Assembly: GCA_020891255.1 (NCBI GenBank)
Contig: BQFW01000001.1
Span: 372,001 to 436,000, forward strand
Direction of reading: 5' to 3'
DNA length: 64,000 nucleotides
Source of the DNA: Entomortierella parvispora E1425
Lineage: Eukaryota; Fungi; Mortierellomycota
Positions within the stretch are counted from its first letter, which is position 1. Each line of letters opens with the position of its first letter. The notes beneath the pieces were generated by a model that was given only the letters and a program-made list of their open reading frames with translations, was not told the DNA's origin and searched no databases. Below, in pieces: positions 1-52,609 of this stretch. Position numbers and translations under genes: made by a program.

Positions 1-650
1 CGTCGTCCTTGAGTACCGCGATGAGGGAATGAATAGCTGGTTCCTGCAATGAAAACTGTTGGCCTAATACCTCTGCTGCGGAAATCCTCACTTGCCGGTC
101 GTCATCTTTGAGTGCAGCGATCAGGGACGTGATAGCTGACTCTGGTAATGAAGACTGCTTCCATAATGCCGATGCTGCAGAAGACTTGACGTTTTTATCT
201 TCATCCTTGAGTGCGGCGATGAGGGAATGAATTGCTGGTTCCAGGAATGAGGACTGCTTGTCTAATACCCTTGCTGCGGAAAACCGGACATCTTTATCAT
301 CATCCTTGAGTGCAGCGATGAGGGAATTGATAGCTGGTTCCGGGAATGAAAACTGTTTGCCTAACACCTCCTCTGCGGAAATCCTCACCTGCCGGTCGTC
401 ATCTTTGAGTGCAGCGATGAGGGAATTGATAGCTGGTCCCTGCAATAAAGACTGCTTGCCCGATGCCTCTACTGCTGAAGACCTGACTCGCCAATATTCA
501 TCCTTGAGTGCAGCGGTGAGGGAATGAATAGCTGGTTCCGGCAATGAAGACTGCTTGGCTATGCCGATACTGCAGAAGACTTGACGTTTTTATCGTCATC
601 CTCGAGTGCGGCGATGATGAGCTGCAACGCTGATTTCGACAGTAGGGAGC
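1..650 (-). repeat. 99-nt (33-aa) HEAT-repeat array of NLR1
   Basis: The motif tccttgagtgc or a close variant recurs near 6, 105, 204, 303, 402, 501 and 600. Units translate as KDDDKNVKSSAASALxKQSSLPExAIxSLIAAL. Confidence 0.93.
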
Positions 651-3600
651 GTGATCCTAAAGTATGTAAGAGTGAGGTTTTGCTCGAATGCGCTGAATTT
701 ATAGCTTCAACTAGGAGTGCCTCAGGGAACGACGGTCGACTGCCTAGCATGCTTCTACTGAAAATATTACGGCGCAAGCGTATCTCCAGGTGTAGCCATC
801 TTGCAAGCTCTGAGTCGTACGAAGCCACGACTGTCGGGTCCAATCGGGCCCGCGCTTCATGAAGGCAAGAGACTAGGATCTGCTGGTGGCGTCCTCCAAT
901 CAAATCCCGTGGCTCTCCTTGCAGAAGTTCAAAAAAATTGGCCAACGGGTCTCCAGCTAATAATCCTGCCACCATCGACCATACAATTTCATACTGAGGG
1001 TTGTATTTGTGATGGTGAACAAAGGCCGTCATCTCCCCCGTATCCATCATTCCAACTGAACATTGCTGAGGTTGAAAATGGCGCACTATCCATGTTGCCG
1101 CGAAATATTCTTGGAACGTCAGATGTAGGAAATGCCAGAGTCGTCGAGAATTGTAGTTTTTGAGATCCGCTGCCGAATCAGCCGTATGTAAAAACGACGT
1201 TTCTTTCATGTGCTCGACCAGGTGGGTAGGCGAAAGCTGTTGGCTAGCTGGTGTAGAGCTCTTCAGATCTTGAAAAGCAGAGCGCATGTCTTTTTCTTCG
1301 AACTCGATTTGGTGATGGTTGGTCATCCCTTTGAAGGCGAGATATCCAAGATGCTGCAGCTCAGTCGCCATCAGCTTGTCAATTTCCTCGGGTTCATAAC
1401 CATGGAGTTGTCGCTCAGTCAGCTCTATTCCACCATCAGTTTTTTTGAGCCGAAGTGCATCCTTGCACCAGAGTTTCCGCACCATTAGTTGATACAGCTG
1501 TGTCATGGTCACTGCCCCGCCATCTGTTGGGAGTGAATTCCAGCTGAAGCAGATCACGTCGAGCTGTACTGGGATGTTGGCGAGTCCTTGAATCAATGGC
1601 GTTTGTCGAATGAACTCCTGGACTGTCCTTGATGGCTCAGGATCGAGCACATTGACCACAAAATCCGTGACATTCTGTTGGCTGAATCCAACAGTTTCGA
1701 GCTCCAGATCAAGTGGTGGTAGTAGTTTGCTGTCCAAGCCAGAGGGTCTTGAGGTGATGATGACCTGTTGCCGCCCAAGTAACATCTTCAAGAAAGATCG
1801 GAAGGTGCTACTTTCGTTCCCTTCGGCCTCTGTGATAATCTCATCCAGACCGTCCAAGATGAAAAGAACCTTGCCCCTTTGAGCGCATGTCACAAGAGTG
1901 GTGGCGAGTGCCACTTGCTCTTGATTGAAGTCCTGAGAGACGAAAACCTTCTCGATAAATAGTCCTTCCAAGGTGCGGCTCTTGAGTCCCCTGAGATGAC
2001 GCAGCGGAATCCAGAGCACGACTTCGAAGAGATCCGTCCAGAGTCCATTCTGATGAGCATGAACGAGTTTCTTGCAAAGTGTCGATTTGCCAATGCCTGC
2101 TCGTCCTTGAACCAAGATCCTTTTAGGAACATCCTCCTTGCCATCCCGCAACTCGCGCTTGTTGAAGAGTTGTTCTAGAGGAATAAGCGACTGGGTGTCT
2201 GTGTTCCGTACCCTTTCGCCACTGGGCATCCGATGAAATACGGCCGCTTGCTCTTTGAGCTCCTGTTTCTCCTTCCGTCGATTTTCTGGTGCCTCCACAA
2301 TCGCGAGATTGACAAAGCATGTCCCCAGATCCAGCTCCTCGCCTGAAATTCTGAGGATATGCAGGTTGGGTGCGTGATAGTTCTTGAGGGCCGATTGAAT
2401 GTCACTCAAACTTGAGATTCGAGGGGCATCTGGTAGGTTCTCAACCTTTGCATGCCGACAGTTTCGATCCTGAACAGCTTTCAACAGTCTAGCCCTTGGC
2501 ACTGAATGCCTATCCGGATCCGTGAATTTGAGATTGATCCAAACTGGCGAATGTTGATCGGCAAAAGGTTCTAACTGTGTGTTCTTCCTTGTCATTTCTT
2601 CCAATAGCGTCCTGGCGGCTATATATGGAGCGAGAAAAAAAAACATTGGCATCAGGACTGAATATCTTTGATATGCTATTCCTGTTATTCCTTGACAGTC
2701 ATGGTGTATAGGGATCTCACCTTCAAACTGTATGACATTTCGGGATTCCACGATAGTGAGTACGTCAAAGATGACCTGATCAACCTCCTTCTGGCGATCC
2801 CAAAGTGAAGCATCCTTGTAGAGTGTTTCAATGAAGGCAATTGCCTCTCGCTGCATCTCCAGGCTCCATCGGTTATCAAGTGCAAACTGCCCAAGCAACT
2901 GGCAGATCCCCCATTGAAACATGAGTTCGTGTCGGCACGGTGTAGTGGTAACCAACGCCTTGAACTCCACTAGCCTTCCAGTATCGATATACGATTTGGC
3001 TTTACGAATGGCATGGTACCATGCGCTCTTGAACTTCAGGCACTCCTTGACTGTGAATGTTAGACTGCCATCGGCGCCTTTGATTGCATCATTCAAGACA
3101 GCCTTGAGATTGCCGATGCCAGCTTTTCCGGCATTGTAAAGTTTTTCCAGGCTTTCGAGCGTGTCCCTCAGGTCCGTTGGGTCAGGCACATTGGCCAGTC
3201 CTGCTCCAACATTCAATAAAAACCAGAATCGTCTGAATCCTGCATGCCAAATATCGTCATCATCAGGCACATTGAGCAGAGCCTGCGTGGCATAGTGAAC
3301 TTGAAATGTCAAGTAAGGGTGTTCGTTTGACTCGATCTCTCGAAGGAACTCCGTCAATGGTCCATGAAGGTTGACACGGTCGACATCTTTGATGTTGGCG
3401 TCCACCATCGCATCCAAAACACGCGAAACAGCAAGTAGCAGCGGATATCGATACTCTGGTGAGCGAGTAAGCTTGAGTCGCTTGAGCAGGCACCGAAGGA
3501 TACTCTCAAGGTCGTCCACGTTGAGGGTTCCTGGGGTGGCTCCTTGAATCGTAATTGCCAAGCCATTCAACGGATGCAACTGTAGAATCTCTGACTCGTT

Positions 3601-4564
3601 GACAGCGTCGATGAAAGTCGCGATGAGGAACTGAGAGTGCTCTTCACTGAGCACAGGGGCCAGTTGGACAACCTCAGCAACACTAGCCGCATCCTTCATA
3701 TTGTCCTTGGTAACTGCGTGGATGACATCGTCGACCATGGTCTCCAAGCGATCTTTCTCACCCGAATCATTCAAGGTGTCAAGTCGATACCTGAGATAAT
3801 CCTGAGAAAGATCGTTATTTTGAACTGACGGCTGCAAAAGTGCGAGACAGCAGGCGAGTTGCAGAGTAGTTTCCAGTTGCTCTCCTGGATCTGGCAGCCG
3901 ATGTAGGTTACGCTTGGGATTAACATTCGTACCAAAGAATGATGGAGATCCTAAGGCTGAACTTGCTCCATAACCGAGATGGCTGGTTGAGAGAGAGGAT
4001 GAGACGAATGGTGAGGCGTTGAGGTAGTGTTGACAGCTGCTGCGGCGGTAGTGGCAATAGAAGAGGGACTGGAGGCGTTGTTGTTTGTCAATGCTGAAGA
4101 GCTCCAGTGAGTGACTCCTCCTTGAGCGATTGCCGGAGAGAACCCTGGTCCTACCAAAGACGGTGCGATAACAGCAGGATGGAGCCTCATTCTCTCGTCG
4201 AGTTCTTGTCTAGTAGTTGTGCAATACCAAATGTTCAATGTAAGTAGAGTGCTTCCAAGATGCCGTTTCCTCAATGGGGAACAATAGTCAGCTACCTTAG
4301 GGCGGCAGCTCTCTTTCTGCACTTGTCTGCTTTTTCCTTCAGCAGTTCTCCTGAGAGATCCAGCACCACGGCAAGATTCAGGAATGCGGCAATCATCTCC
4401 TCCATATCCTTGGAATTGGTCCTCTTGACATCCACTTTGGCGAGGGTATTCTTTGCATTTTGATAATGCTTAATGACGTTGGGTTCGGAACCCATGGCTT
4501 TTCGAGCTTCCTCAGTGCTGGCTGTTGCCTGAGTTAAGGCCACTTGTGCAGTAAGATGCGGCAT
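1..4564 (-). pseudogene. NLR-like gene 1 (helical N-terminal exon - ARM-like domain - NACHT - HEAT repeats) with two 1-nt deletions; runs off the window start
   Basis: Exon 1 starts at ATG 4564; intron 4210-4295 (GT..AG). Frameshift near 3970 (AISV-AT-GASSALGSPSFF compared with the paralogues). Intron 2619-2720. Walker A QGRAGIGKST and Walker B LFILDGLDE. A deleted T at ~560 (GCA TTA GCC to GCA TAG) creates the stop at 559-561; HEAT repeats continue stop-free in another frame to position 1. Confidence 0.88.
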
Positions 4565-7770: not shown

Positions 7771-8143
7771 GGGCCCTAACAGAGGTACATTAAAGCTCGT
7801 CTTAGACTCAAACTGCAAACAAATAGACCTCGTGCAACAGTCAAATCAGACTGACCGTGCAGCGCCTTCACTTACAGCAAAGCCCCAAACAAATGGTCAA
7901 CAACAACCACTGCCACCACTGCCACCATTGCCACCACCACAAGCAACACTTCTCAACCTTTAGTATAAATAACCCAGACTTCACATCAATAAATAAACAT
8001 CATTCAATCTTCGTGTTCTTTCCTTGGCCTTTACTATTGCACAATCCTCTCTATTCATAGATAATAGATGCTCAAGTGAACAGCCATTTAATAGGAAAAA
8101 TAAAGAAACGAGATGTGGGCAGTTATAGTAGGGACCGTACTAC

Positions 8144-8467
8144 CTAGATGGACGTAATGCTCTGAGCGTTGCACGTCACATGAAAGTGACCTTGGTCAGC
8201 TATAACACCGTCATAAGCACTCTTTTCAGAGCAACAGTAGGATTTATCGCAGTTTTCATTCTCGATAATGATTGATTCACAATACTGCTTTTTGAGATCC
8301 CACTCTGAAAAACAATTAACACCCTCGGTTATTCTGCTCTGACATGTGGCTGCGACATCTGTAGATTCACCGAAAAAATAACAGTAATTTTGCTTAATGG
8401 GGTCGGCGGAGACATGTGTCGAAACGAAAAGACAGAAAACGAAGAAAGCCAAAAGATTGCGAGCCAT
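8144..8467 (-). CDS. Small secreted cysteine-rich protein, copy A (107 aa, 8 Cys in the mature region)
   Basis: Signal-peptide-like MARNLLAFFVFCLFVSTHVSA; Cys spacing shared with the 36450-36776 paralogue. Confidence 0.82.
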   Translation of the reverse strand: MARNLLAFFVFCLFVSTHVSADPIKQNYCYFFGESTDVAATCQSRITEGVNCFSEWDLKKQYCESIIIENENCDKSYCCSEKSAYDGVIADQGHFHVTCNAQSITSI

Positions 8468-8914
8468 TATGACAAAGGATGCGTGGTGTACGAAAAAAAG
8501 GAGTGTCAAGAAAATAGAATCCTATAGTATACAGTAAAAGATGATTGAGGATGAGATGAATAGATCATTTATGTTAATCGCTGTATTACAATGCAGTTGC
8601 GTCATTGCTGTTTGTAAATAACCGTATTATTTTGTTACCTTGAGGCTTCTTGTGAGGGCTCTTGTGACGATTCGTGTGGGGTTTCTGTTCTTTTGGCGAG
8701 TTGTATGGAGCTCTAGAGCTCTAGTGATGGAATGTATGAGGTTCTTGGAATAACTAGTTGTGTTGGTTCCTGAAAGTGGAGTGTAGTGAGTGCCTCAGTC
8801 GACGTCTTGAAAGTTGTTGGTTGATTGGGGGTGCGGGTTCCCCGAAGTCATACTCTTTTATACAAGAGGCGGTTCCTATGGTTTTTGCCTTTCCTATTGT
8901 GCAAGACCCCGAAT

Positions 8915-9135
8915 ACCCTTGACCTTTTGGTCTAATTTTCATCCCTTGACTTTTAGTCCAATTTTTTTGGTCCAATTATCATCCCCTGACTTTTTTCATC
9001 CCTTGACTCCCTTGACTTGCATGCCTTACTTTTTCCGTTTTTCCTATCCCTTGACCTTTTCTCATCCCATGTCCCTTGACTTTTTTCATTCCTTAGTTTT
9101 TCCTGTCCCTTGACCTTTTCTTCATCCCTTGATCT
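8915..9135 (+). repeat. Cluster of about 10 degenerate (T)nCATCCCTTGAC motifs
   Basis: Repeated atcccttgac/gtcccttgac motifs abut the TIR at 9152; duplicated at ~37220-37450. Confidence 0.75.
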
Positions 9136-14760: not shown

Positions 14761-15873
14761 GAATAGCTGGCTATCAAAGAGACGGTCCATTTCATCATCT
14801 GACAGATATGGCACTGCTTTGAACAATGAACGGCTGTAGTCTCCAAGAATTATGGTGGTGTAATGTCTAACGTTCGAATCGTCGTCCATGAGCAGGGCGA
14901 TTAAAAACCGCACAGATGATTCCTGCTTGGAAAAATGGTGATCCAATGTCGATACTACTGCAGAGCCAAGATTTTGACCTCCATTCTTCAGCGTGGCAAT
15001 GAGCGTGGCGATGAGTGTCTCGACGACTGACTCGGGCAACGGAGAATACTTGTGTAATACCAATGTTGCTGAATGCCTGATATTGACATTGGCGTCTGTA
15101 AGTGTGGCAAGGAGAGACTGGATGGCTGATTCCTGCAATGAAGGCTGTTCGAATAGTACCGATAAGACTGAGAGCCTGACGTCCCAACTGTGATGCCTGA
15201 GTGTTGCGATCAGAGATTGGACGGCTGATTTCTGCAATAGGGATTGCTTGATAATACCAGTGCTGCTGAAAATCTCTATCGCCCTTGAGTATAGTGAAAA
15301 GGTACTTGATGACTGTCTCCGATAACAAAAACTGGCTACCTAATGCCAGTTCTGCTGCAGACCCGACACTTTCATTGTCGTCCTTGAATGCATTAATGAG
15401 CGCTTGGGTGGCAGATTCTGACAATACAGAGCGAGTCCTTGTTCGAATGTGGAGAACCTAATTAATCGACTAGAAGAGTCTCAGGGAGGGACAGTCGGCA
15501 GCCTAGCATGCTTCTGCCGAAGTTGTTTTGACGCGTGTGCATCTCCAAGTGCAGCCACCGCATGAGCTCTGATTCCAGTGCCTCTCGGACTGGAGTTTCT
15601 AATCGTTCTCGAGCCTCTGTCAGACAAGATGCGACGACCTGTTGATGGCGTCCTCCAATCAGATCGCGCGGCTCTCCTTGTAAACGCCCAAAAAATGCGC
15701 TCAGCTGCTCTCCTTCCAGCAGAGCTGCCACCATGGACCACACAATCTCATATTGAGTGGTCATACCTTTGTCGGTGAACAAAGACGGTTAACACCTCCG
15801 TGGGCATCATCCCACCTAAGAAGTGTAGCCGTTGAGGTTGAAAATGGCGCACGATCCACGTGGCCGCAAAAAG
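14758..15873 (-). pseudogene. 3' fragment of an NLR-like gene (post-NACHT region and HEAT repeats) with several frameshifts
   Basis: FAATWIVRHF at ~15870-15840, QYEIVWSMVAALLEGE, RDLIGGRHQQ and HEAT units are spread over three ORFs (15462-15782, 14867-15424, 14758-15237). Confidence 0.88.
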
Positions 15874-16182: not shown

Positions 16183-17172
16183 ATGCATCTCTCAGATCTC
16201 CATCTTTCTTTTTCACGCGGCCGGACATTAATCATCCCCCGAAACTCGACTGATCCTGATCTAATGTCCGATGCCACCACCCAATCTTCCCCCGACATTG
16301 CCACCTTGGCAGCTGCGGTCCTATCTCTTACCCAGAAACTATCTGACCAAGATCGACTCCTCAAGGAGCTACAGGACCAAGCCACTGAGAGCGACATTCG
16401 TCCTGGACAAGTGGTCTACAAGAGTGACCGAGCAACCACTCTCTTACAATACCCGGAACTTCAGAATCAGTACCCAGCAATCACACAAAAACACTTCTTC
16501 AACACTGTCCTCCCTGCAGGACATAACCTCTTTGACTGGAACGACTATCACTACACCGATGGTATGGTCTACAAAGCACCACCAGTCTTGGAACATCAGG
16601 GCGTCACCCTCCCAGAGTTGGCTCGCAAACATGAGCAGGACCTGGCCAAGATTCAGGGACACATGGCCAACTCCACGAGATTGTTCGACACACTCGTCGA
16701 CGAAATTCTCACATATGAAATGGACGCAGACGAGCTCGCCAAGCACGTCATTTCATTTGTCAACACTGCCCGCATCTTGGTATCTAACGACGCCTCCAAG
16801 ATCAGCCTCATGCGGAAGGACATCTATCTCCGCCATCTGGAACTCCCAACTTCAGAGCCCCAGGAGAATGCTATCCTCACTCTGGAAGACCTCGCCAAAC
16901 GTAGAACGACTGTGGACCTCGTCAGCAAGACTTACACCAAGCCAAGCGTCAAGGAAAGCAAGAGACCCTTGCATAAGAAACCCGGGTTCAAGAAGAAGCA
17001 ACCCGAGGACTCAGACAAGAAATCTACCCACGAGAAGTCAAAGGAGTCAACAAATAGCCGTGACGGTGGCGGCAGGAACAACCGCCCTTACAAGGCCAGA
17101 AAGTCGAGCAACTACGACGACAACAAGTCTGCAGGAGACAAGGGAAACGGATCAGAGAAGGAGCGCCAGTAG
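16183..17172 (+). CDS. DIRS gag-like protein (start probably MSDATTQ)
   Basis: First ORF of the element, basic C-terminal tail, homologous to ORF 45189-45857. Confidence 0.8.
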   Translation: MHLSDLHLSFSRGRTLIIPRNSTDPDLMSDATTQSSPDIATLAAAVLSLTQKLSDQDRLLKELQDQATESDIRPGQVVYKSDRATTLLQYPELQNQYPAITQKHFFNTVLPAGHNLFDWNDYHYTDGMVYKAPPVLEHQGVTLPELARKHEQDLAKIQGHMANSTRLFDTLVDEILTYEMDADELAKHVISFVNTARILVSNDASKISLMRKDIYLRHLELPTSEPQENAILTLEDLAKRRTTVDLVSKTYTKPSVKESKRPLHKKPGFKKKQPEDSDKKSTHEKSKESTNSRDGGGRNNRPYKARKSSNYDDNKSAGDKGNGSEKERQ

Positions 17173-19035
17173 GAGCACGCCTTCTCCAATTCAAACGGGA
17201 ATGGGAGGAGATGACAGATTCAACTTGGGTCAACAACATTGTCAGCAAGGGGTACTCGATCGTCTTCAGCAAACCACCGCCAATGCGCCTCCCACCAATC
17301 CACGATCCCTACACCACACCAGCGGAGAAGGAGGAAATAAACAAAGAGATCGTTTCTTTATTACAAAAAAGGGCCATAGAAGAATGCTCAGGCTGGGGAT
17401 ATTACAGCCGTCTATTCACAATACCCAAGAAGACAGGGGGCCTCCGCCCTGTCCTCAACCTTCGACCTCTCAACCAACACCTGAAGGCCCCACATTTCAA
17501 GATGGAGACGCTCACTCACATCTGCCAAATGTTGCGGCCGAAGGATTGGTTGACATCAATCGACTTAAGCGACGCCTTCCTCCACGTCGCCGTACAGCCG
17601 AAAAAGTCGACGCTACCTACGCTTCCGATGGCACGGGAAGACATATCAGTTCAGGACCCTTCCATTCGGTCTCTCACTGTCCCCTTACGTCTTCACCAAG
17701 ATCATACGACCCATCCTGCAGTGGGCACGCAAACAGGGGATCCGCATTTCAGCATATTTAGACGACATATTAGTTGCCGCAACCAGCAGAGAAGAGTCAG
17801 AAAGACACACTCTCATGGTACGTCAGAAGCTGGAACGACTGGGATTCCTCATTCAGAACGAGAAATCAATGCTTACGCCTTTGCAACAGATCAATCACCT
17901 GGGATTTCACATAGACACCGTCCAAATGTCACTGTCAGTCCCGGGGAACAAGATCCGAGACCTGAGGAGAGAAGCCAACAAGATGCTGCAGGCAGCAGCA
18001 GTCCCGCTGAAGAGATTGGCGTCCTTCATAGGGAGAGCGATGTCCATGACAGTGGCCATCTTTCCAGCACGACTAAAGACGCGCCGACTCATCCAAGCTC
18101 AGAACTCAGCATTAGCAAGGAACTGCCCATGGACGGAGTCTGTCACACTGGACCACCAATCGAAAGAGGATCTTCAATGGTGGTGCAAAAACCTGTCGAC
18201 ATGGAATGGTCAGGGATTCCTCCCCCAGAGGTCAGAGATCGATGTATTCACGGATGCATCTCAGGACGCATGGGGGATAGTCTACGAGGACGAGGAGATC
18301 TCGAAGACATGGACACAGGAGGAGCAACCGTATCACATCAATTACAAGGAATTGAAGGTGATATGGCATCTGATACACCTGCCGGACATGCGCGGCAGGA
18401 CAATCCAGGTAATCTGCGACAATACGACGGCAATTGCGCAGATAAACAAGTTTGGAGGGACCAAATCAAAGCGATTGCTGGACCTAGCAACACAAATTTG
18501 GGACTATTGCATCAAGACGGGAACCCGACTCATGACAACGTACGTACCGTCTCAGTTCAATCCAGCCGACTCACCATCGAGACGCATGACAGCACAGTTG
18601 GAGTGGTCGATCAACAACTCGTTCTATCGACAGCTAGACTCGACCTGGGGGCATCACTCAGTCGATCTATTCGCCACGGCAAAGAACGCGAAGACTCAAC
18701 GCTACGTCTCCTGGATGCACGAGGAGACAGCGTGGAGACAGGATGCGTTCAGCTTCAGTTGGAAGGACCTGGGCCGAGTCTACATCTGCCCACCGTGGTC
18801 ACTCCTCAACCGAGTCCTGGAGAAGATCAGAACGGACAAGGTGCAGGCGACAGTGATCACACCACAGTGGCCTGCTATGATTTGGTACCCTACAATCCAG
18901 GCCATGTCAACACACAGCCCAATCCCAGTACCGAGGACAATGGTACAACCCGCACCAGGAAACAGCCCACAGCCACTGGAGCGGAACCCCATGTGGCAGT
19001 TAACAGCGTGGAGCGTCGACGGCAGCAAGCTGTGA
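17142..19035 (+). CDS. DIRS RT - RNase H - adenine-methyltransferase-like ORF, interrupted by one extra A at 17601-17605
   Basis: PVGARLLQFKREW…FTIPKKTGGLRPVLNLRPLN…IDLSDAFLH in frame 3. After removing one A it reads SRRYLRF…LPFGLSLSP…AYLDDIL, then FTDASQDAWG (RNase H) and DLFAT…DAF…YICPPW (MTase-like). Confidence 0.92.
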
Positions 19036-20081
19036 CCACAGGGGCCGACGCAGGAGTCATTCGCCGATTGTTTGACTCCAAATCCGCTCAGGAAAGGAAC
19101 AAGAGCACATCGAGTCAACGAACATTCACGCAATGGATGCAGGAGAGAGGTCGACCACTAGAGGATACCTCACCTACGGACTTGATGAACTTCCTGAACT
19201 ATGGAGTGGAGATTAGGGCTTGGAAGCCGCAAACGGCCCGAGCCTACTTGTCATCAGTACTCAAACTCTTCCCGAGGGACCGTCAGGAAGAGTGGCGAGC
19301 GGATGAAAATCTGTCAGATTTTCTAAAGGTCATTGGTGCACACACACTCAAGCGGCTACGTCACGACGACGCGGATACGACACCTATCTTCATCGAGATC
19401 CTCAAGAAGGGTGAGAACAAGGGCCTAAACATTAGGCACTTGACATCGAAGACATGCTTCTTGCTGGGACTGGTAGGACTCCTTCGACCGGACGACTTGG
19501 CTTGTATAGACACAAAGCAGTGCCGAATTCGAGATGGAGTGCTGGAATTGACCATCGTCTCTCCCAAGGAACGTCGAGATGGACAACGCATTATCAAGAC
19601 CGTCTTGATACATCCGCACACAGATCCAATCTTTTGCCCGGTAGAAGTGTATCAGGAGTACCGTAGGCGTACTGAGAAACACGACGAACATGCAAGGCAG
19701 CAACACCCCAAGCTGGACAAGGAGTTGTTGGAGGTTGAAATAATACCCCTAATCAGGGAGATCAGCTATGGCAAATCGCCTCTGGGAGCAGAGAGAATCT
19801 CCAAGTACCTTGCCGTCCTCCTGGATCTGATGCCCAGAGAGAAGGGGCAACCCCGCCCAAAGGTCAGGGCGCTGGGAGCTACGAACGCCCTCAAGAAAGG
19901 GGTTCCGTTGGAGGAAGTGACCGTTCAAGGGAACTGGTCATCGCCTACCATGGTGGAGAACTACTATCGAATTTCAAGGACCCTCGTTAGCAACTTCACC
20001 AACACTCTTCTTCCCCGACATCTGGATTCACAGATAGAGTCCCTTGGAGGGGGAAGAATAATGTCTAGCGTTGCCGAATGA
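19036..20081 (+). CDS. DIRS tyrosine recombinase domain (C-terminal part of a long overlapping ORF)
   Basis: LLRPDDL (first Arg), CPV, PKVRALG (second Arg), GNW and NYYR (Tyr). The frame is open upstream across the RT/RH region. Confidence 0.88.
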
Positions 20082-27947: not shown

Positions 27948-30616
27948 CTAAACGTTGAAGCCCTTGTCATTCGCAGACGAAATGCACTTTGATGCATAGT
28001 GAGAAAAGACGATGTCACTGACAGTATCAGACGTCAGACGAGTACGCTTGTCTGTAACTGTGTTGCCAGCAAAACTGAACATGCGCTCCGAAGCTACAGA
28101 GGTAGCAGGCATAGCAAGATACTTCCTTGCCAATTGTGCCATGAGTGGATACTCGTCTTTGTTTTCCCTCCACCAATGGAATGGATCAACAATTGCACGC
28201 TCTCTTGGTCGAGCGAAATACCTTGTGGCCTCATCTCTCGCCGTTACTGGAGTAGGGATCCGATCCTCATCCGTTTCAAGATACGCAAATACACTGTCCT
28301 TGTGACTAATAGCTTCGACAGGGTTCGAGGGAGCCGCCTCAGGAACTGGCTCCCGATCCGCCAGCCGCATACATTCTGCCCGAATCTTAGTCTTGATCAA
28401 CCCGACGCGGTCTTCATCGCGGATATACCAAAGGTTATGGAACGATGGGTGAAACGCAGATGCAACTATCACAGTATCTGTCAACTCGACCCTGTTCTCG
28501 AGCTCAATCACCAGATCATCGCGGAAGTCGGCCATAGGTCCGACCTCGATCTCCATGCCCCGTAGTTGTGCAGCAATTGACATTACCCAAGGAGCCATGG
28601 TCGCCAAAGTACCGTTCTCCGACGAGGAGAATATCTGCGTAGTCCGGAACATAGGCTTAAGAATCTCGATGAGTATGTCGATTCGACGCCATGACGCAGG
28701 GGCAGGGAGGCGTTCCCTGAGCTTGGCAGCAGCGACAGGGTCTGCCTCGTCGCCATCACTTAGCCTTTGAAGGACATCTTCCATGGACTTGAGTAGATGT
28801 CTTGCCCGCTCAAGCATCGTCAGGGTGCTGTTCCATCGGGTGACAACGTCCATCATCACAACCAACGCTCTCGAGGTTGGGTTGAGACGTTCTTGAGACC
28901 CTTGAAGCAACTGAGTCATTTTCGGGCTTGAGTGAAACAATTTGCACAACTTGTGGACACTGTCAACAAGGCTCCGGATGTCGTAGTGTTCGTCAACCTC
29001 CAGTGTGCTCTTGATTGCATTATGTACACTGTGGGCCAGGCATGGGATTCGAGGTAAAGACGACATGGCGCACGCATTCTCCACAGCCCTGGCGCTGTCA
29101 GTAGTAATCGAATTGATCATCAGATTAAGATCCCATTTGAAGATTATCTCCCCTATTCAGAGTCATGAAAAAGAACCAAAGTCAGGAAAAAGATCATCAT
29201 GTAGATTTCAAGGACAACGCACCATCAAATCATGGACTTACTAATTAGACCTGCCATCGCAAACGCAGTGTGCGGATAAGGTTGAGGAGCCATGTCCAAT
29301 GCACACTCATGTTGGTGAAAGTTGCTATCCAGCCACTGGAACGTGAAAGACATAAATGGCTTTCCAGCATCACTTGTCCAACTGTCAATGGTCATTGAAC
29401 CACTGATACAGCTCCGATCCAAGAGGGTTTTGAGACGTTCAGTCAACATCAATCGATGGTCCAGAAGGCCAGTCCTCGCAGTGCGGCCACAAGGAATCGT
29501 AAGAGATGAGTTGAAGAGACGGATAAAGGCTCTAAAATAGTCCGAGTCCAACACGCTGAAAGGTTGCATATCTGAGACCAGCCAGTTCAATGCGGAGGTG
29601 AGGATGACCTTGTTGCTTGGGATAGTTGACATTGAGTCACGGATAGACGTTTGTGTCATTGTCACATCCTCGCCATTCCTGTGTCCACCTTTGAGCTCGG
29701 TATAGACTGAGCGATGCGCCTTCTTGAAATGGTAATTAAGAGTGGAGGAGGAACTCTTTGGAGAAAAGACGCTATTGCAGTGGGGCTGCCCACAGATCAA
29801 CTTCCACTGCATTTGCCCGCCTATCTTCTTCTGTCCAGCCTTAAAATATAGCTTCCATACCCCTACAAAACAAAAAAAAAAACTAGCCCAGGAAGGTTTT
29901 AACAACTGCATCAAACAAATCAAACGTAAAGGCATACCAGGAGCTTCGGGGGGAGGATTGGGATCAGGGGGTAAGTCTCCAGTGGAGTCGTTGGATCGTT
30001 CTGGCCTCAGGATTGGAGGGAAAATAGGGCGCGACGGTTGAGGACTTAGTAATGGATGTAGTGCCTCACGGAACAAAAGGGTAGGCGTAAGGCTCCTTTC
30101 CCTTTCTTCAGAAGCAGAAAAGGCGTCTTGATCAAAATAGGCATCGTCGTCAACATCAGAATCAATGCTGAACGGGTCAATGGCTGACTCTTCTTCATTT
30201 TCATCATCAATTTCAGAATCTTCATCCTCATCTTCAGACTGACTTAGTCTTCGCTTCGGTAGTTGTTTACCAGAACCGCGGGAATTCTGGGATGCATCAT
30301 CCGTAACTACGGCCGGGGGAGAAGATGCAACTGCTGAAGCTTGAAGGACTGACGAAGAAGTCGATGCAACTGTTGAAGATCGCAGGGCCGATGAGCTGGG
30401 TGACACCGCCGAGGAGGAAGATGCAGCTGTTGAAGACCTCTGGGTTGACGAACTGGACGTACGGTTTGACGGTTGAAGGACTGACGAAGATGATGATGCA
30501 CCTATTGACGATCGCAGGGTTGGGGGTCGTCGTGTTGGCAGCACCGGCATGGGCACAGATTTACGAGGACGAACAACAGGCTTGGGGCGTTCCTTGACCC
30601 TCTTTTTGGGAGGCAT
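27948..30616 (-). CDS. hAT transposase (834 aa): BED zinc finger, RNase-H-like core, hATC dimerisation domain
   Basis: Exons 30616-29938, 29862-29242 and 29152-27948 join in frame (2505 nt). Motifs: VWKLYF…ICGQPHC…HFKKAH; TIDSWTS; ITTDSA; CLAHSVH; DVVTRWNST; WW…YP…LARKYLAMPATSVASERMFS. Confidence 0.93.
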
Positions 30617-31029
30617 GGTTTCTAGTGAATTTTTAAAAAAAAAAAGTGAAAAAAAATTAGCACGTGATTCATACGCGTCTGCATTTGACAACGAGTAAAA
30701 ACTAACCAGTGGTTGCAACACTTGGGAAGGCTGGAGATCAGGAAACCAATACACCAGACTCGGCTTTTATAACGAGAAGACAGTGAGCAACCAAAGGCTC
30801 AAAGGCTATACGGATATTGAGCAGGGGCACAGCATTGGTCCAGACCTGAGAGATACAGTGGTACCCCTGCTCACTCTGGAAGGAAGGGGATGGGGGGTTC
30901 ACCCAGCCAAGTATCAGGACCCGGACGATAACGTGTTTCCATTGCAAATGGAAAGGAAGTAAAGTAAAAACGTGGTCCCTGACAAACGAGCGGACAGGGA
31001 TGCAAGACAGCGACATAATGAATTCACGG

Positions 31030-31850
31030 TTTTCCAGGGTCATGACCCAGACCCCTGACGAGCAAGTGCTTGTTCCAATGAAAGGTGAGTAGATAGGGGG
31101 GCGAGAATGACTCATAATGAGAGTAACCAAGCCTGAATCCAGTGAAAGGTGAGTGGACAGGGAACCGGACAGAGACATAATGAACGAATCCACTTTTTTC
31201 CAGGGTCATGAGGAGCCAGGACATGCAAAAAAGGCGAGAGAACAAGGGAACCGGACAGAGACATAATGACATAATGAGATAATGAGGGAATCCACTTTTT
31301 TTCCGGGGACATGAGGAGCCAGGAAATGCAATGAAGGCGAGAGAACCAGGGAACTGGACAGAGACATTATGAGGGAATTCACTTTTTTTCCAGGGTCATG
31401 AGGAGCCAGGACATGCAAAGACGGCGAGAGAACAAGGGGACCGGACAGAGACATAATGAGATAATGAGGGAATGCCCTTTTTTTCCGGGGACATGAGGAG
31501 CCAGGAAATGCAATGAAGGCGAGAGAACCAGGGAACTGGACAGAGACATTATGAGGGAATTCACTTTTTTTCCAGGGTCATGAGGAGCCAGGACATGCAA
31601 AGACGGCGAGAGAACAAGGGGACCGGACAGAGACATAATGAGATAATGAGGGAATGCCCTTTTTTTCCGGGGTCATGAGGAGCCAGGAAATGCGATAAAG
31701 GCGAGAGAACCAGGGAACTGGACAGAGACATTATGAGGGAATTCACTTTTTTTCCAGGGTCATGAGGAGCCAGGACATGGAAAGAAGGCGAGAGAACAAG
31801 GGAACCGGACTGAGAAATAATCAGGGAATTCACTTTTTTTCCAGGGTCAT
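31030..31850 (+). repeat. Higher-order tandem array inside the hAT (alternating ~95 and ~87 nt monomers, ~182-nt dimer)
   Basis: ccagggtcatgaggagccaggacatg at ~31200, 31389, 31571 and 31752, alternating with ccgggg(a/t)catgaggagccaggaaatg at ~31302, 31484 and 31665. Confidence 0.92.
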
Positions 31851-35149: not shown

Positions 35150-36500
35150 AATGAGGGAGAGAATCTGAAGCGGGGCATGCCCAAACGTTTGCGTTTGACC
35201 AGGGGCGGTGTCCTGACGTGTGCCGTTCTTAATAGCGCAGAATTTTATTTTTTGACCTATATATCCCCACACTTTTCAAACTAGTGTGAGAGCAGAAAAA
35301 ATGGACAGGCAGGGGAAGGCCTTAAAGACAGGGGGATGGTGGGGAGGCGGGAAAGAATGAAATGGGAAACACCACAGCGACCAACCACGAGAAAAATTAT
35401 CCGACGCGACAACGTCATCCATGATCCTCCAACTCATCCAGCTCATGTGGGATATTTGGCAGATCAGAGTTGTCTGGAAGAGTTGGCACTGGCATACCGT
35501 CAAAGTCGGTTAGATTTTTGCCAACCAATTCCAGGAGAAGGGCCTGGACGTCCAACAGTGCCTTGTTAGCCGAGACACAGCAAACTCGTCAGTCTCATCG
35601 GCCGTAGTGGCTTCTCGTTCGCGAGGATCAAGGTCGAAGGCCAAATCGCACTGAAATGCGCGCCACAGTTCGCCAGGGTCTGTTGGATTGCAGTATGTGG
35701 GGATCATAAAGAATAGCCTCCGCAACTGATATCCTGTTTTGATGCGTGCGGCTGTTGACAGACATTGCTGCCACTCTTCATCGCTCTCGAGAAGTCCACG
35801 GGCGCGGCAGCATTCTTTGAAAGTGCTGTGAAGGACATCATCGAATGTTTTCAGATCGTCATATGACCTGGGACTCTCTACCGTAATCAAGAGCAACCGC
35901 AAGTAAAATAGCTCGCCGAAAGAAGGTTGTACAAAGATAAGTCTGCCAATAGCAAAACCTGTTTGCCTCGGCGTCCAGAACTTGCCGATCTTGTTGTGCA
36001 CATAGGCCCTCAGAAACTTGGGGTATGTCATCCGGGAGCTGTCTGGGTTCTTGCAACGGAAGCGCGTCAACGATCCTAGCATCTATAGCCCTGCCTGCAA
36101 CAAGCAGACTTCGTGCGACAGTCAAATCAAGCCGACCGTCTGTCGCCCCCTCCCACAACAAAGCGACCAATAAAAGGTCAACTACAGTACAACCATTAAC
36201 ACCGCTGACATTGATGCCACCACCACAACACCATGAACCCTCCACCCTCATATAAATACACCACACTTTCATACCAATAAACATTATTCATTACTCCCAC
36301 CTGCCTCCCCCTCTGTACCTATTACACGCATAGAGCTTGTCTTAGACTCAACCTCACTATTCACCGATAATAGATGCTTAAGTGAAAGGTCATTTAATGG
36401 GAAAAATAAAGAAACGAGATGTGGGCAGTTGTAGTAGGGACCGCACTGCCTAGAGGGACTTGATTCTCACAGCAGAGCACTTCGCCTGAAAGTGAGCTTG
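35150..36500. repeat. Direct duplication, partner at ~54185-55620 (Helitron relic plus SSP 3' end)
   Basis: gagaatctgaa…cccacacttttcaaactagtgtgagagcag…gaaacgagatgtgggcagtt is collinear at both sites. Confidence 0.9.
35510..36082 (-). mobile_element. Helitron RepHel fragment 1
   Basis: KFWTPRQTGFAIGRLIFVQPSFGELFYLRLLLITVESPRSYDDLKTFDDVLHSTFKECCRARGLLESDEEW…QLRRLF…CNPTDPGELW is the conserved region between the Rep and Pif1 helicase domains of Helitrons. Confidence 0.85.
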
Positions 36501-46692: not shown

Positions 46693-49600
46693 TTAAGGAT
46701 ATGGGTAATTCAACACCATCTGTTGGACAGCCTTGAAGACTGATGATATTCTATCCTGATTGTTGCTACCATCTGAAGCAAGTTGGAGTTGCAGCTCGCC
46801 TTGCTCAGTGTAGAGACACAGTCCATTGTCACATGCCTGTAAAGATATAACATTACTGCAGCTGTAAGGAAACAAGTGGTGGTTAAAAAGACAAAATATC
46901 TCATCTTCTGATAGGATTGGGAGTAACCTGAACAGAGATGGGCTATGACATCCAAGAATCTCTGAAACATAGGATGCAACTTCATCTTCGTCTTCATTGA
47001 CCATGGCGACAAGGGAACGGATGGCTGTTGACGGGATCGAAGACTGCCTGTCTGAAGCTGATACCATTGCAGATCTGGCAAACATATCATGATTTTTGAG
47101 TGCAGAGATGAGGGACTGAACGGCTGATTCTGAAAGCGAAGGCTGGTCGCTTAATATAAATGCTGATGAATACCTGGCTTCCCAGTCGTCATCCTTAAGT
47201 CCAGCAATAAGGGCTTGGATAGCTGATTCCGGTAACGAAGGCTGCTTGCCAAGTGCCAATGCGACTGAAGTCCTGACATGTTCATTGTCATTTTTGAGAG
47301 TGGCGATGAGGAACTGGATGGTTGACTCCGGCAAAGAAGACTGTTTGCCTAATATTAATGCAGCTGAAGACCTGACTCTTTTATCGTCACCCTTGAGTGT
47401 TTCCATGAGGGATCGGGTGACTGACTCCGACAAAGATGACTGTTTTCCTAATGCCTCTGCTGCTGAAGACCTGACGTTTTTATCATCATCCTTGAGTGCG
47501 GTGACGAGGGCCTGGACAGCTGGTTCCAACAATGAAGAATGCCTGCCTAATGCCTGTACTACTGAAGACCTGACATCGCATTCATCATCCTTGAGTTTAG
47601 CGATAAGGGACTGAATGGCTGACTCCGACAAAGAATTATGGTTGCCTAATGCCTCTGCTGCTGAAGACCGGACTCTTTTATCATCATCTTTGAGTGTGGT
47701 GACGAGGGACTGTATAACTGATGATGACAATGAAGACTGCTTGCCTAACGCCGATGCTGCCGAAGACCTGACATTTTTATCATCGTCCTTGAGTGTGGCG
47801 ATGAGGGACTGAATGGCTGACTCCGACAAAGATGACTGGTTGCCTAATGTCTCTGCTGCTGAAGACCGGACTCTTTTATCATTATCTTTGAGTGCGGTGA
47901 CGAGGAACTGTATAACTGATGATGACAATGAAGACTGCTTGCCTAACGCCGATGCTGCTAAAGACCTGACGTTTTTATCTTTATCCTTGAGTGCTGCAAT
48001 GAGGGACTCGATCGATGATTTAGGGAGTGAAGACTGACCGCGTAATATCAATGCTGCTGAAGACCTGACATATTTCTTGTCGTCCTTGAATGAGGCAATG
48101 AGGGACCGTATGGCTGATTCCGGTAATGCAGACTGCTCGCACAAAATTGATACTGCTGAAGACCTGAAGATTATATCGTCATCCTTGAATTTGGATATGA
48201 GGAACTGGATAACTGACTCCGGTAATGAAGAACTATAATCACTTAATATCTCTTCTACTGCCTGTTGGACAGCTAGGTTGTCATCGCTGAGTGCGGTGAT
48301 GAGGGAATGGATAGCCGATTCCGGTAACGGAGACTCGAGGCCTAATTCCTCTACTGCTGAAGACCTAACGTATTCATCCTCATGGATATCCTCGAGTACG
48401 GAGATGAAGGACCGAATGACCGATTCTGACCTTATGGAGCGAAACCCTAAAGTGCGTATGAGCGAGATCTTGTTCCATTTACATCGCGTCGAACGTAATG
48501 CTTCAACTAGAAGCGCGTCAGGGAATGACAGTCGACTGCCCAGCAAGCTTGCGGCGTCTCCATCGTCTTCACGCACCTGTATTTCCAGGTGTAGCCACCG
48601 CACAAGCTCGGAGTCGTATGCAGCTACGACTGCTGAGTCCAATCGAGTCCGCGCCTCATTCAGGCAAGAAACCAATATTTGCTGATGGCGTCCTCCAATC
48701 AAATCACGCGGCTCTCCTTGCAAACGTTCGAAGAAACCAATCAATGGTTCTCCTTCCAATAGTCCTGCCACCATCAACCATACAATCTCATACTGAGGGT
48801 TGTATTTGTGGCGGTGAAGAAAGGCCGTCATTTCCTCTGTAGTCATCATTCCAGCGGCGGAACATGATTGCTGGGGTTGAAAATGACGGACGATCCACGT
48901 TGCTGCAAAAAATTCCTGGAAGGTCAGGTGCAGGAAATGCCAGGCTTGTCGAGTACTGCGGTTTTTGAGATCCAAATTCGAATCCGTTGTATGTAAAAAC
49001 GATGTTTCCTTCATGACTTCGGCGAGATGGGTAGGCGAAAGTTGTTGGCTATTTGTTGTAGAGTCCTTCAGATCTCGAAATGCAGAGCGTAGGTCTTTTT
49101 CTTCAAACTCGATCTGGTGCTGGTTGGTCATCCCTTTGAAGGCAAGATATCCAAGATGTTGCAGCTCAGTCGCCATCAACTCATCGATTTCCTCGGGCTC
49201 ATAATCGTGAATTTGTCGCTCTGTCAGCCCCAAGCCGCCAGCAGTCTTCTTGAGTCGAAGGGCATCCTTGCACCAAAGTTTCCGCACCATCACTTGATAG
49301 AGTTCTGTCATGGTGACTACCATGCCATCTTTTGGGAGTGAATCCCAGCTGTAACAGATCACGTCGAGCTGTACTGGAATATTAACAAGTCCTTGGATCA
49401 ATGGCGTTTGTCGAATGAACTCTTGGACTCTCTTCGCTGGCTCGGGATCCAGTACCTTCAATACAAAGTCCTTGACATCCTGGTGACTGAACCCCACAGT
49501 TTCCAGCTCCAGATCGATTGTCGATAATAATTTTCTGTCCAGGCCAGACGGCCGCGAAGTGATGATGACATGTTGTTGCCCGAGCAACATCTTTAGAAAT

Positions 49601-51996
49601 GGTCTGAAGGTATCGCTTTCATCCATGCCTGCGTCCGTGCGAATCTCATCCAGACCATCCAAGATGAACAGAACCTTTCCTTTCTGAGCGCAAATTGCAA
49701 GAGCTTTGGCCAGAGCCGCCTGTTCTTGGTGGAGGTCCTGAGCAATAAAGACTTTCTCGAGGAACAGTTTCTCTAAGCTGCGACTCTTGAGTCCTCTGAG
49801 GTTGCGTAGTGGAAGCCGCAATACGACGTCGAATAGATCTCGCCATAGTCCATTCTGGTGCGCATGAACAAGTTTCTTGCACAGTGTCGATTTGCCAATG
49901 CCTGCTCGTCCTTGGACCAAGATCCTGTCAGGAGTATCAGCCCTTCCATCGCGTAGTCTGCGCTTGTTGAAGAGCTGCTCCAATGGGATCAACGACTGGA
50001 TATCTGTGTCACGCACTCTTTCGGTGCTAGTTATCCGATGAAAAGTAGCTGCCAGCTTTTGAAGATTCTCTTTTTCTTTTTGTCGATGTTCTGGCGCTCC
50101 AACAATTGCGAGATTGACAAAGCATGACTCCAGATCCAGTTCGTCTCCTGAAACTCTGAGGATAGAAAGATCTGGTTCATGGTAGATCCTGAGAGCTGAA
50201 TGAATGTCGCCAAGATTTGGAATTGAAGCGGTGTCTTGTAAAGTCCTAATCTTTGCATGTCGAACGTATCGATCCTGAACAGCTTTTAATAGTCTTGCCG
50301 TTGGGCTGGAATCTAGATCTGTGAATTTGATACTGATCCAAATTGGCGAATGTTGGTCGGCAAACGCTTTTGACTGTGTATTCTGCGTTCTGATTTCTTC
50401 CAATAGCGTGTTGACGGCTATACAAAAACGAAAGAAAAAAAAAAAAGCAAGAGGTCAGGACCAAGATACTTTGGTAGGCTGCTAGTTGGTAATCATGGGT
50501 ATAGAAATGTCGCTTATAATTGACATACCTTCAAAGTGCGCATTGTTGTGGGATGTGACATTAGTGAGTATGTCAAAGATGACCTTGTCAACCTCTGTCT
50601 TCCGATCCCAAAGTGCAGTGTCCTTGTAGAGTGCTGCAATGAAGGCAATTGCCTCTTGCCGTACCTCAAAGCCCCATCGGCTATCAGTCACAAACTGTCC
50701 AAGCAGCTGGCAGATTCCCCACTGAAACATAAGATCGTGTCGGCACGGTGCGGTTGTTACCAGAGTCTTGAACTCTACTAGCCTTCCATTCTCAATATAT
50801 GACTCAGCCTTGCGAATAGCCCGGTACCAGGCGCTCCTGAACTTCAGACCCTCCTTCACGGTGAATGTTGGGGTATCATTTCCTTTGATTGCACTATCCA
50901 TGGTAGCCTTGAGATTCCCGATACCTGATTTGCCAGCTTTATAAAGTTTTTCTAGGCTTTCGAGTGTGTCCTTCAGCTCCTTCGGATCAGGCAGTTTGGC
51001 TAATCCTGCTCCAATATTCAATATAAGCCAGAATCGTCGAAATCCAGCGTGCCAAATATCGTCATCGTCAGAAATATTGAGCAGTGCCTGCGCGGCATAC
51101 TTGACTTGGAAAGTCAGGTATGGGTGATCACTTGACTCTGAGTCTCGAAGGAATTCTGTCAATGGTCCATGAAGGTTGATGCGGTCGATATTTCCGATAT
51201 GAGCATCCACCATCGCATCCAAAACTCGCGAGGTAGCAAGTAGCAGGGGATATCGATGCTCTGCTGAGCGATTGGGCTGGAGTCGTTTTTTCAGGCACCG
51301 CAGAATTGTCTCAAGGTCATCCGAGTTGATGGATCCTGGGATAGCTCCCCGAATCGCCTTAGCCAGCCCATCCAGTGCATCCAAATCCATCATCTCGGAC
51401 TTGTTCAGAGTGTCGATGAAGGTTTTGATGAGAAATCGCGAGTGGTCTCTACTGAGCACAGGAGCCAATTGGACAACCTCGGCCACAGCAGCTGAGTCCT
51501 TCCTGGTATCTTCAGAGAACAGTTCTAGGACATGAACAGCCATGGTCTCCAAGCGTGTCTTCTCGTTCGAGTTATTCAAGGTGTCGAGTCGCCACTTGAG
51601 TGCCTCTGCAGAGAGATCATCATCTTCAACTGACGGCTGCAGTAGTGCGAGGCAATAGGCGAGTTGGTGAATGGTTTGTAATGGCTCGTCAAGATGAGCA
51701 AGCGAGTAGGTGGCGGGTTCAGGTTTCACATTCTTGCTGAAGAACGATGGGGAGCCCAAGGTCGCATTAACCGCCCCAATCGAGATAGCTGACTGAGAGG
51801 AAGGATGCGATGGTTGTCGAGGAGCTAAGGCAGTGTCGTCATTTTTTGCAGCAGAAGTGGTGAAAAATGTCGAAGGAGCGGCGGTGCTGTTTGTCGACGA
51901 TAAAGAGCTCCAATATGTGACTCCTCCTTGAGCGATTGCCGGAGAGAACCCTGGTCCCATGAAAGATAGCGCCATAGTCGCAGCATGGATTCTCAT
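46693..51996 (-). CDS. NLR-like protein 3: ARM-like domain - NACHT - about 12 HEAT repeats (1730 aa); lacks the helical first exon of its paralogues
   Basis: Exons 51996-50529 and 50417-46693 join in frame (5193 nt). Motifs QGRAGIGKST, LFILDGLDE, WHFLHLTFQEFFAA and 33-aa repeats. Confidence 0.9.
47000..48190 (-). repeat. 99-nt HEAT-repeat array of NLR3 containing a recent 198-nt doublet duplication
   Basis: The unit pair …KNVRS.AASALGKQSSLSSSVIQ / …KRVRSSAAE.LGN..SLSESAIQ occurs twice (47615-47812 and 47813-48010). Confidence 0.93.
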
Positions 51997-52609
51997 CCTC
52001 TCGTCCCTTGCTTGCCTAATGGAAGTACAACTTTGCCTGTTTAGCACAGATATAGGAACTCACAAGCAGTACCTACCCAATTCTCATAAAAAAATATTAA
52101 AGAAAGAATAAACCTATTATCAGTCCGAGGTGAAAATTGGTGTTGACTGGGTGTGAAAATCTCATCAGAATTCTGTCTCACGCCCTTCCAACCCCGTTAG
52201 AATGGCCCCGAGCGCTGTTTCCTGTCATCTTCCGGAGTGAAAGATGCGGCTCCTGGCATTCTCAGTCCCCGTGCGCACTGAGTTACCGCTGAGTCTTCCT
52301 CCCCCGTTCTCTTTGGCGACTCGAAAATCTCTGTCTGCCTTTATAAATGCAAACTCGACTCCCATCATCTTGAAGACCCTTTCACCTTTGACAACAGAGG
52401 CAGATGTGGAGGGCATCTCCTTCTATGAACTCCACTTTGTAGTTGGACATGACTCGCGGGAAGTCAGGGAAAACAAATCGACCCACCCTTTGGTGGCGTG
52501 TGACTGACTTCCAAGTGAAACCGAACCACACGAATCGAGAAGTCTGGGCTCGAAATGCTGCATTCTTACATCTTCATTGCATCACCATCGCACATCTAAC
52601 TCCATTGCA

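Follow-up and report, generated by a model that had tools for sequence, protein, structure and literature searches.

Hypervariable positions in the HEAT repeats of NACHT receptors from Entomortierella parvispora and their likeness to alphaRep binders

The 99-nt tandem repeats at positions 1-650 of the window (the whole 64,000-nt stretch analysed, G000:C1:372001-436000, in a genome of 38.9 Mb and 20 contigs) probably make up the proximal end of a sensor-type domain at the C-terminus of an NLR-family STAND NTPase, a grade that applies to our explanation as a whole. Here termed NLR1, this array is one of at least 23 paralogous arrays in the genome, and its variable residues gather on one face of a helix at positions that are largely those varied in the artificial alphaRep binders. 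Judging from the codons, diversifying selection at these positions is likely in the young arrays only. The locus is thus genuine, yet unremarkable within a receptor family that has already been published.

Both arrays considered in the window, NLR1 and NLR3, are coded by the minus strand and on translation consist of 33-residue units of the form LPEsAIqSLIaALKDDDxxVRxSAAxALGxQSS. At NLR1, Tandem Repeats Finder detected a 99-nt period at window positions 1-617 (6.2 copies, 74% matches) together with an extra 297-nt higher-order period (82% matches). A partial HEAT unit at 1..49 (-), beyond which the array goes on to the left of the window, adjoins five complete in-frame units of 99 nt (33 aa) at 50..544 (-), whose signatures at unit positions 18, 19, 22, 26 and 30 are WRSEK, RQIEK, KDFRK, KNSSK and RQIEQ. 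All the variable residues that the sequence-only reading had listed for NLR1 (KN/S/S/K, WR/S/E/K, RQ/I/E/K, KD/F/R/K, KN/S/S/K and RQ/I/E/Q) were recovered in the minus-strand translation. The first canonical unit (..ALEDDDKNVKSSAVSA) lies at 545..643 (-) and is one base short in comparison with its sibling units, and degenerate capping repeats at 644..780 (-) separate the regular array from the NACHT-associated helical region; the NLR3 counterpart of 644..780 is coding. HEAT_2 matched the part of the array inside the window with E 8.7e-26 (2-574, minus strand). The array extends about 1.85 kb past the left edge of the window, to about G000:C1:370153, and totals about 24 units, 23 in frame and the first, broken one.

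Upstream of the array, the main open frame of NLR1 at 559..3837 (-) holds ARM_5 (E 1.3e-49), an in-frame stretch annotated as an intron, the NACHT NTPase (PF05729, E 2e-16) and helical domains. N-terminal open frames follow at 3951..4564 (-), and the ORF at 4292-4564 opens with the same residues as the annotated protein P0003. The searches used the open frames as they stand, each one unspliced.

When the first NLR1 unit is aligned with three siblings, a 1-nt gap is seen between window positions 561 and 560, adjoining a T, which produces a TAG at 559-561 and places the rest of the array in another frame. Since the sequence stems from a 2018-era Nanopore/SMARTdenovo assembly that was polished by means of Nanopolish and Pilon (PMC8759367), a one-base error in a tandem array is plausible; the NLR1 copy in the assembly is either a recent pseudogene or carries a residual Nanopore error. 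The public model P0003 (1890 aa) splices out window 556-780, some 70 codons whose counterparts in the paralogues are coding, and its C-terminus is out of frame, the conserved C-terminal domain being intact in another frame. This supposed intron at 556-780 was rejected, being coding in the paralogues and ending exactly at the frame-break TAG. A second frame change, towards the end of the array, falls in 116 nt between two HEAT units at L034:3350-3467 (G000:C1:370349-370466, minus strand; coordinates of the NLR1 locus, L034, become window coordinates on subtracting 5001). Here the sequence may contain, at approximately L034:3361-3437, a genuine 77-nt GTGAGT...AG intron, whose removal would bring the array back into frame with 13 inserted residues; the paralogues examined have no intron at this position.

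The second array belongs to NLR3, whose main open frame at 46693..50403 (-) encodes NACHT (PF05729, E 4.5e-21), helical domains, the HEAT array (HEAT_2, E 4.4e-86) and a C-terminal tail. The array itself occupies 46939..48327 (-); its 14 units share one frame and precede a tail of about 80 aa, and Tandem Repeats Finder found a 99-nt period at 47216-48231 (10.3 copies). An upstream open frame at 50482..52047 (-) carries ARM_5 (E 1.2e-51), and the short gap between the two frames is presumably an intron. The residues earlier listed for NLR3, namely KY, KN, KR, CD, EH, WE and MF at positions 18-19 and S/L/E/Q/F at position 26, are likewise all present. The tail of about 80 aa (..LSEDEIFCLFNHHLF..CLYTEQGELQLQ..), at window 46693-46938 (-), is conserved and has an equivalent in NLR1; for NLR3 it was modelled with low confidence as three short strands and a helix, and it falls outside the Pfam families.

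NLR3 was identified as EMPS_00101 of Entomortierella parvispora when its NACHT half was used in a word-based protein search (100% identity over the searched residues 1-640), with EMPS_00113 as a paralogue at 91% and more than 100 relatives in Mortierella, Linnemannia, Dissophora, Gryganskiella, Podila and Haplosporangium. Several paralogues are annotated merely as "bilin biosynthesis protein" or as hypothetical. Compared with that of EMPS_00101, the array of EMPS_00113 has an additional unit of 31 residues and lacks one codon in another unit, and the two arrays also differ in a two-unit block that looks converted. Directly upstream of its array, EMPS_00113 (L036, G000:C1:469-471 kb) is frameshifted and contains stops.

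Both genes fit the NLR architecture. The NACHT P-loop NTPase of NLR/STAND proteins is evident from the Walker A motif GRAGIGKST in the translations of NLR1 and NLR3, and in both the HEAT repeats lie C-terminal to NACHT, as in the N-NACHT/HEAT class. For the helical domain after NACHT the matches are weak, NLRC4_HD2 at E 0.0013 and NOD2_WH at E 0.004, both below the Pfam cut-offs. Genes of E. parvispora have been assigned to N-NACHT by Bonometti et al. 2025 (PMC12258605), and NLR3 lies within the published gene set of the species through its identity to EMPS_00101. The NLR1 receptor runs from an N-terminal helical/ARM_5 region through NACHT to about 24 HEAT units of 33 aa.

It can be seen from structure and sequence searches alike that the repeats are alphaRep-like HEAT units, as had been proposed. 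Of 21 PDB sequence matches at E <= 1e-5 (phmmer; E 3e-62 to 6e-6), 20 are alphaRep constructs or a fusion with alphaRep-like repeats and the remaining one is a natural HEAT protein, while Foldseek aligned alphaRep-7 and bGFP-A (4zv6_A, 4xl5_C) at TM 0.80, rmsd 3.6-4.0 A and 38% identity. The alphaRep proteins (Urvoas 2010; Guellouz 2013), derived from PBS-type HEAT-like repeats such as Mth187, share the helix-turn-helix unit with the NLR arrays. They differ from them in a unit of 31 rather than 33 residues, the inter-unit loop being two residues longer in the NLR arrays according to HMMER alignments, and in being artificial binders, whereas the NLR arrays are natural and fused to a NACHT NTPase.

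The genome-wide extent of this repeat was assessed by a DNA search that returned 99 matching stretches in about 25 places. From these, 20 regions were extracted and searched in all six frames with a profile built from NLR3 units, giving 426 gap-free units in 23 arrays, among which 383 score at least 20 bits; the unit set excludes four arrays on contig 13, those on contig 15 and in the tail of contig 7, and that at 284-290 kb of contig 6. Across the 383 units of the 23 arrays, entropy is highest at position 18 (3.48 bits), followed by 19 (3.43), 33 (3.12), 26 (2.79) and 22 (2.53); it is moderate at 30 (2.31) and low at 23 (1.42). Residues L28, L9, L13, A24 and R21 are nearly fixed, positions 12, 17, 29 and 31 vary too, and the five-residue signature takes 326 distinct forms in the 383 units. 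The loop position 33, absent from the earlier note, varies as much as the helix sites.

The positions varied in alphaRep are 18, 19, 22, 23, 26 and 30, which form a concave binding face (Guellouz et al. 2013, PMC3754942), and the earlier statement that alphaRep is randomised at such positions was right (PMC3754942). The proposed coincidence stands for five of the six, namely 18, 19, 22, 26 and 30, and fails at 23, which is a conserved Ser in 288/383 units with an omega of 0.3-0.45. Of the five sites with the highest entropy, four are among those varied in alphaRep (hypergeometric P about 0.002), and in a codon model of the young arrays the five highest omega values fall at exactly the five noted sites (P about 2.5e-5). 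The side-chain mix of alphaRep at each position was, for its part, taken from "a collection of natural alphaRep-like motifs" (PMC3754942). Because the alphaRep positions copied natural repeat variability, the match is partly circular and lends no independent support to a recognition surface; the parallel is neat, yet largely expected.

With AlphaFold2 the NLR3 array was modelled as a regular solenoid whose repeats have a pLDDT of about 85, and the helices H202-211 and H217-228 correspond to unit positions 3-12 (helix A) and 18-29 (helix B). At 100 degrees per residue, positions 18, 19, 22, 26, 29 and 30 fall inside a 120-degree arc, with V20, R21, A24, A27 and L28 opposite. For helix B the variability moment comes to 0.37, which only 9 of 10,000 permutations reached; the variable sites are thus not scattered but lie on one face, in agreement with the surface proposed in the earlier reading. 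Each unit is a helix-turn-helix in which helix A and the buried side of helix B (V20, R21, A24, A27, L28) build an alphaRep-like solenoid, and positions 18, 19, 22, 26 and 29/30 form a stripe on one helix B face, with a combination that differs in nearly every unit. By homology with alphaRep crystal structures and from the helix periodicity, this stripe is predicted to line the concave surface.

Turnover of units is most evident in NLR1 and its nearest relatives. Over the unit set, nearest neighbours come from the same array in 158 cases, where 20.5 would be expected, with 22/23 in NLR1 and 26/27 in L033. NLR1 is made of a few recurring unit types (RQIEK, EDFKK, WRFEK and others) in irregular order, and the recurrence of these types accounts for its 198- and 297-nt higher-order periods. 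Mean within-array nucleotide identity is 0.77-0.84 in six young arrays on contig 1 (L031-L034, L037 and L039, NLR1 being L034), 0.58-0.65 in the old arrays and 0.68 in NLR3, where 10/13 units pair with colinear units of EMPS_00113. The claim of concerted repeat shuffling accordingly holds for NLR1 and its nearest relatives, by the 22/23 own-array neighbours and the recurring types, but not for NLR3, at 68% identity and colinear with its paralogue, nor for most of the family. Exchange between paralogues had no strong evidence, except among L031/L032/L033/L037/L039. Arrays change by duplication and loss of whole units or of blocks of two to three units.

For repeats of high internal conservation (HIC) two thresholds are in use, a Psim >= 0.7 (Ament-Velasquez 2026) and an identity >= 85% (Dyrka 2014). 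NLR1 has a Psim of 0.77, against 0.78-0.81 for five other contig-1 arrays, 0.69 for NLR3 and 0.60-0.71 for the old arrays; pairwise amino-acid identity has a mean of 0.66 and a maximum of 0.71, with no array at 85%. The positive selection at a few surface repeat positions that is associated with HIC-type repeats was found for the young arrays and not for the old ones, by home-made tests that do not model recombination.

Estimates of selection depended on which units were compared. Parsimony counting on a tree of all 383 units gave omega 0.95-1.09 at positions 18, 19, 22 and 26 and 0.68 at 30, none of the five sites being significantly above 1, with scaffold sites at 0.1-0.6; the old arrays (contigs 2, 6, 7 and 13) gave 0.8 at the five sites. 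The six young arrays gave 1.85 at the five sites against the synonymous rate of all codons and about 1.1 against that of the same codons. The single-step synonymous rate is equal in both codon classes (0.0356 vs 0.0354), and multi-nucleotide codon changes number 83 in the 5 codons of the five sites versus 88 in 28 codons, more than five times denser per codon. Trees of 99-nt units are weak, and inter-repeat recombination, which is certain, inflates such tests; all omega tests here ignore it.

Pairwise Nei-Gojobori counting over all within-array pairs (omega 1.2-1.3 at 18 and 19) was set aside as saturated (dS 0.77). Choosing nearest pairs by total identity is biased against differences at the test sites, and a tree-free held-out design was used instead, in which independent nearest pairs were chosen from half of the scaffold codons and dS was taken from the other half. 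This design gave omega 1.5-2.3 at the five sites, with a bootstrap interval excluding 1 in 6/6 settings; a variant with local dS only gave 2.32 [1.64-3.51] and 1.28 [0.92-1.82].

A home-made GY94-type likelihood model on a fixed tree was fitted as well. For the six young arrays it yielded omega 4.2 with a shared synonymous rate and 2.45 with a free rate (p 5e-8); for NLR1 alone 2.25 (p 2e-5) and 1.54 (p 0.29), respectively; and for NLR3 with EMPS_00113 2.73 (p 7e-9) and 3.67 (p 8e-4). In the young arrays sites 18, 19, 22, 26 and 30 are each significant after Bonferroni correction, with site 23 at omega 0.45. The absolute values are probably inflated, since the scaffold omega is 0.89 in this model against about 0.57-0.61 by counting. 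Diversifying selection as earlier proposed is likely for the young arrays and recently diverged unit pairs (held-out 1.5-2.3; likelihood 2.45-4.2), and is not supported for the old arrays or in pooled counting, where omega is at most about 1; omega is not below 1 everywhere, as it exceeds 1 at the five sites in the young arrays. In these arrays, NLR1 included, amino-acid replacement on the stripe outpaces synonymous change.

Several other explanations of this pattern can be weighed. We consider it unlikely that relaxed constraint is all there is, i.e. that the five sites are the solvent-exposed, structurally free ones found in any PBS-type HEAT repeat and drift neutrally in a birth-and-death family with many decaying copies, with neither adaptive diversification nor a specific ligand surface. 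An omega of about 1.0 over all units, below 1 in the old arrays and about 1.1 against the dS of the same codons would be expected of such drift, and a scaffold omega of 0.5-0.6 together with the frame breaks in NLR1 and EMPS_00113 fits a partial decay of the family, to which the decayed remnants at 14830-15424 and 38751-40361 can be added; the designers of alphaRep, moreover, saw the same positions vary in unrelated natural repeats. Neutral drift is nevertheless at odds with the held-out pairs, whose intervals lie above 1, with likelihood ratio tests that reject omega = 1 in the young arrays even with the free rate, and with multi-nucleotide changes over five times denser at the five sites while single-step synonymous rates are equal. 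A related but quite improbable explanation holds that the array is a general scaffold or autoinhibitory domain, which keeps NACHT closed or recruits a constant partner, and that its variation is tolerated and unused. No ligand is known for any fungal NACHT-HEAT protein, and the "bilin biosynthesis protein" or hypothetical annotations of several paralogues are in keeping with a general role; the variation is however focused on the face that binds the target in alphaRep complexes, this face changes faster than synonymous sites in the young arrays, and the WD40, ANK and TPR repeats of other fungal NLRs behave alike and determine specificity in HET-E/D/R (PMC4986451).

That the differences among units, or their order, come from a mis-assembled Nanopore consensus over a long tandem array is hardly credible. 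The Nanopore/SMARTdenovo origin of the assembly (PMC8759367), the poor polishing of tandem arrays by short reads and the one-base gap beside a T at 560/561 speak for such an artefact, but the unit differences are mostly substitutions in defined codons rather than indels, the pattern recurs in 23 separate arrays, homologous NACHT-HEAT proteins exist in other genera of Mortierellaceae and coverage is 409x (PMC8759367). Our preferred explanation remains that of a sensor-type domain in an NLR, in which the stripe would bind a ligand and binding would switch the NACHT module, by analogy with other NLRs.

The wider surroundings of the two genes hold further NLR-related and mobile sequences. What is left of a decayed HEAT array, five units interrupted by a frame change, lies at 14830-15424 (-), and at 15532-15813 a 282-nt stretch is 60% identical to NLR1 773-1054. 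An NLR N-terminal fragment at 38751-40361 (-; ARM_5, E 1.2e-39) has neither NACHT nor HEAT after it; beside it lies a dispersed repeat at 36352-37322 that recurs at 8046-9015 with 84-98% identity. A hAT-family transposase occupies 27948-30754 (-), with Dimer_Tnp_hAT at E 5e-20 in ORF 27948-29120 and a 509-aa ORF directly upstream. At 16183-20081 (+), in a region whose AT skew is strong (0.18-0.21), a 956-aa open frame has no Pfam match at E 1e-3; this may be a DIRS-like retroelement, going by a reverse-transcriptase-like motif near its start and a C-terminal part that looks recombinase-like by eye. Non-coding tandem arrays are found at 31158-31850 (87/182-nt period, 94% matches) and 61118-61504 (perfect 215-nt unit, 1.8 copies), and a pair of dispersed copies at 35243-35934 and 54278-54970, 19 kb apart, is 92-96% identical.

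Fungal N-NACHT/HEAT NLRs have been described and 26 were counted in E. parvispora (Bonometti et al. 2025, PMC12258605); they share species, architecture and gene set with NLR1 and NLR3, of which the ARM_5 N-terminal region lies outside the canonical effector domains of that study. PMC12258605 classifies domains and counts genes; a term search of its main text gave nothing on which repeat positions vary, on selection or on conservation among the repeats of one array. A close parallel is Pa_6_7270 of Podospora anserina, a sesB-like / N-NACHT / 33-aa HEAT protein with high internal conservation and 3-12 units among strains (PMC4986451 Table 4; PMC13449251), to which the present genes are alike in the 33-aa HEAT units, a putatively NAIP-like NACHT, some degree of internal repeat conservation and the change in repeat number. 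They differ in the N-terminal domain and in forming about 25 paralogues rather than a single gene, and the Pa_6_7270 polymorphism is between isolates, whereas our comparison covers paralogues and units of one genome, where the one-unit indel between the recent paralogues EMPS_00101 and EMPS_00113 serves as a proxy for repeat number. Internal conservation is also lower in E. parvispora (Psim 0.77 in NLR1 and 0.69 in NLR3) in relation to the 85% criterion of Dyrka.

Positive selection at surface positions, with concerted evolution, has been described for the WD40, ANK and TPR repeats of Podospora (Dyrka 2014, Ament-Velasquez 2026; PMC4986451, PMC13449251). The HNWD/HET-E, ANK and TPR NLRs of Podospora follow the same logic, in that units on a conserved scaffold are shuffled and a small number of surface positions are hypervariable, with omega above 1 at these positions; HNWD/HET-E proteins however form a beta-propeller, as opposed to the alpha-solenoid of HEAT in E. 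parvispora, and homogenisation is much weaker in the E. parvispora arrays (77-84% nucleotide identity in young, 58-65% in old). Mortierellomycota NLRs have been proposed as shared with Mycoavidus endobacteria, with the architecture NACHT-PPR-WD40 (Ciach et al. 2024, PMC11291939), unlike the NACHT-HEAT of NLR1 and NLR3. One genome scan with the NACHT part of NLR3, sensitive to close relatives only and so of little weight for a bacterial origin, found no bacterial or archaeal relative. A comparison of variable positions in NLR HEAT repeats with those of alphaRep was not found in the literature.

Overall, the gain is incremental, as the gene family, its species count and internally conserved fungal NLR HEAT repeats are already published. 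What is added is an extension of a known pattern of Dikarya WD40, ANK and TPR NLRs (fixed scaffold, few fast surface positions, unit turnover) to HEAT solenoids and early-diverging fungi, with a site-by-site map that is directly comparable with a well-characterised engineered binder scaffold. As a tentative and rather doubtful proposal, the NACHT-HEAT receptors of Mortierellaceae could be nature's own version of an alphaRep library, one that diversifies by itself, with about 25 arrays per genome, and might sense microbial partners or antagonists such as the Mycoavidus endobacteria of this host. One concave surface would then be explored by unit duplication and by accelerated replacement at five to eight positions. 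Were this true, the natural signatures could serve as a source of pre-selected surfaces for binders, and in an early-diverging fungus HEAT would be added to WD40, ANK, TPR and LRR among the evolvable scaffolds of immune sensors.
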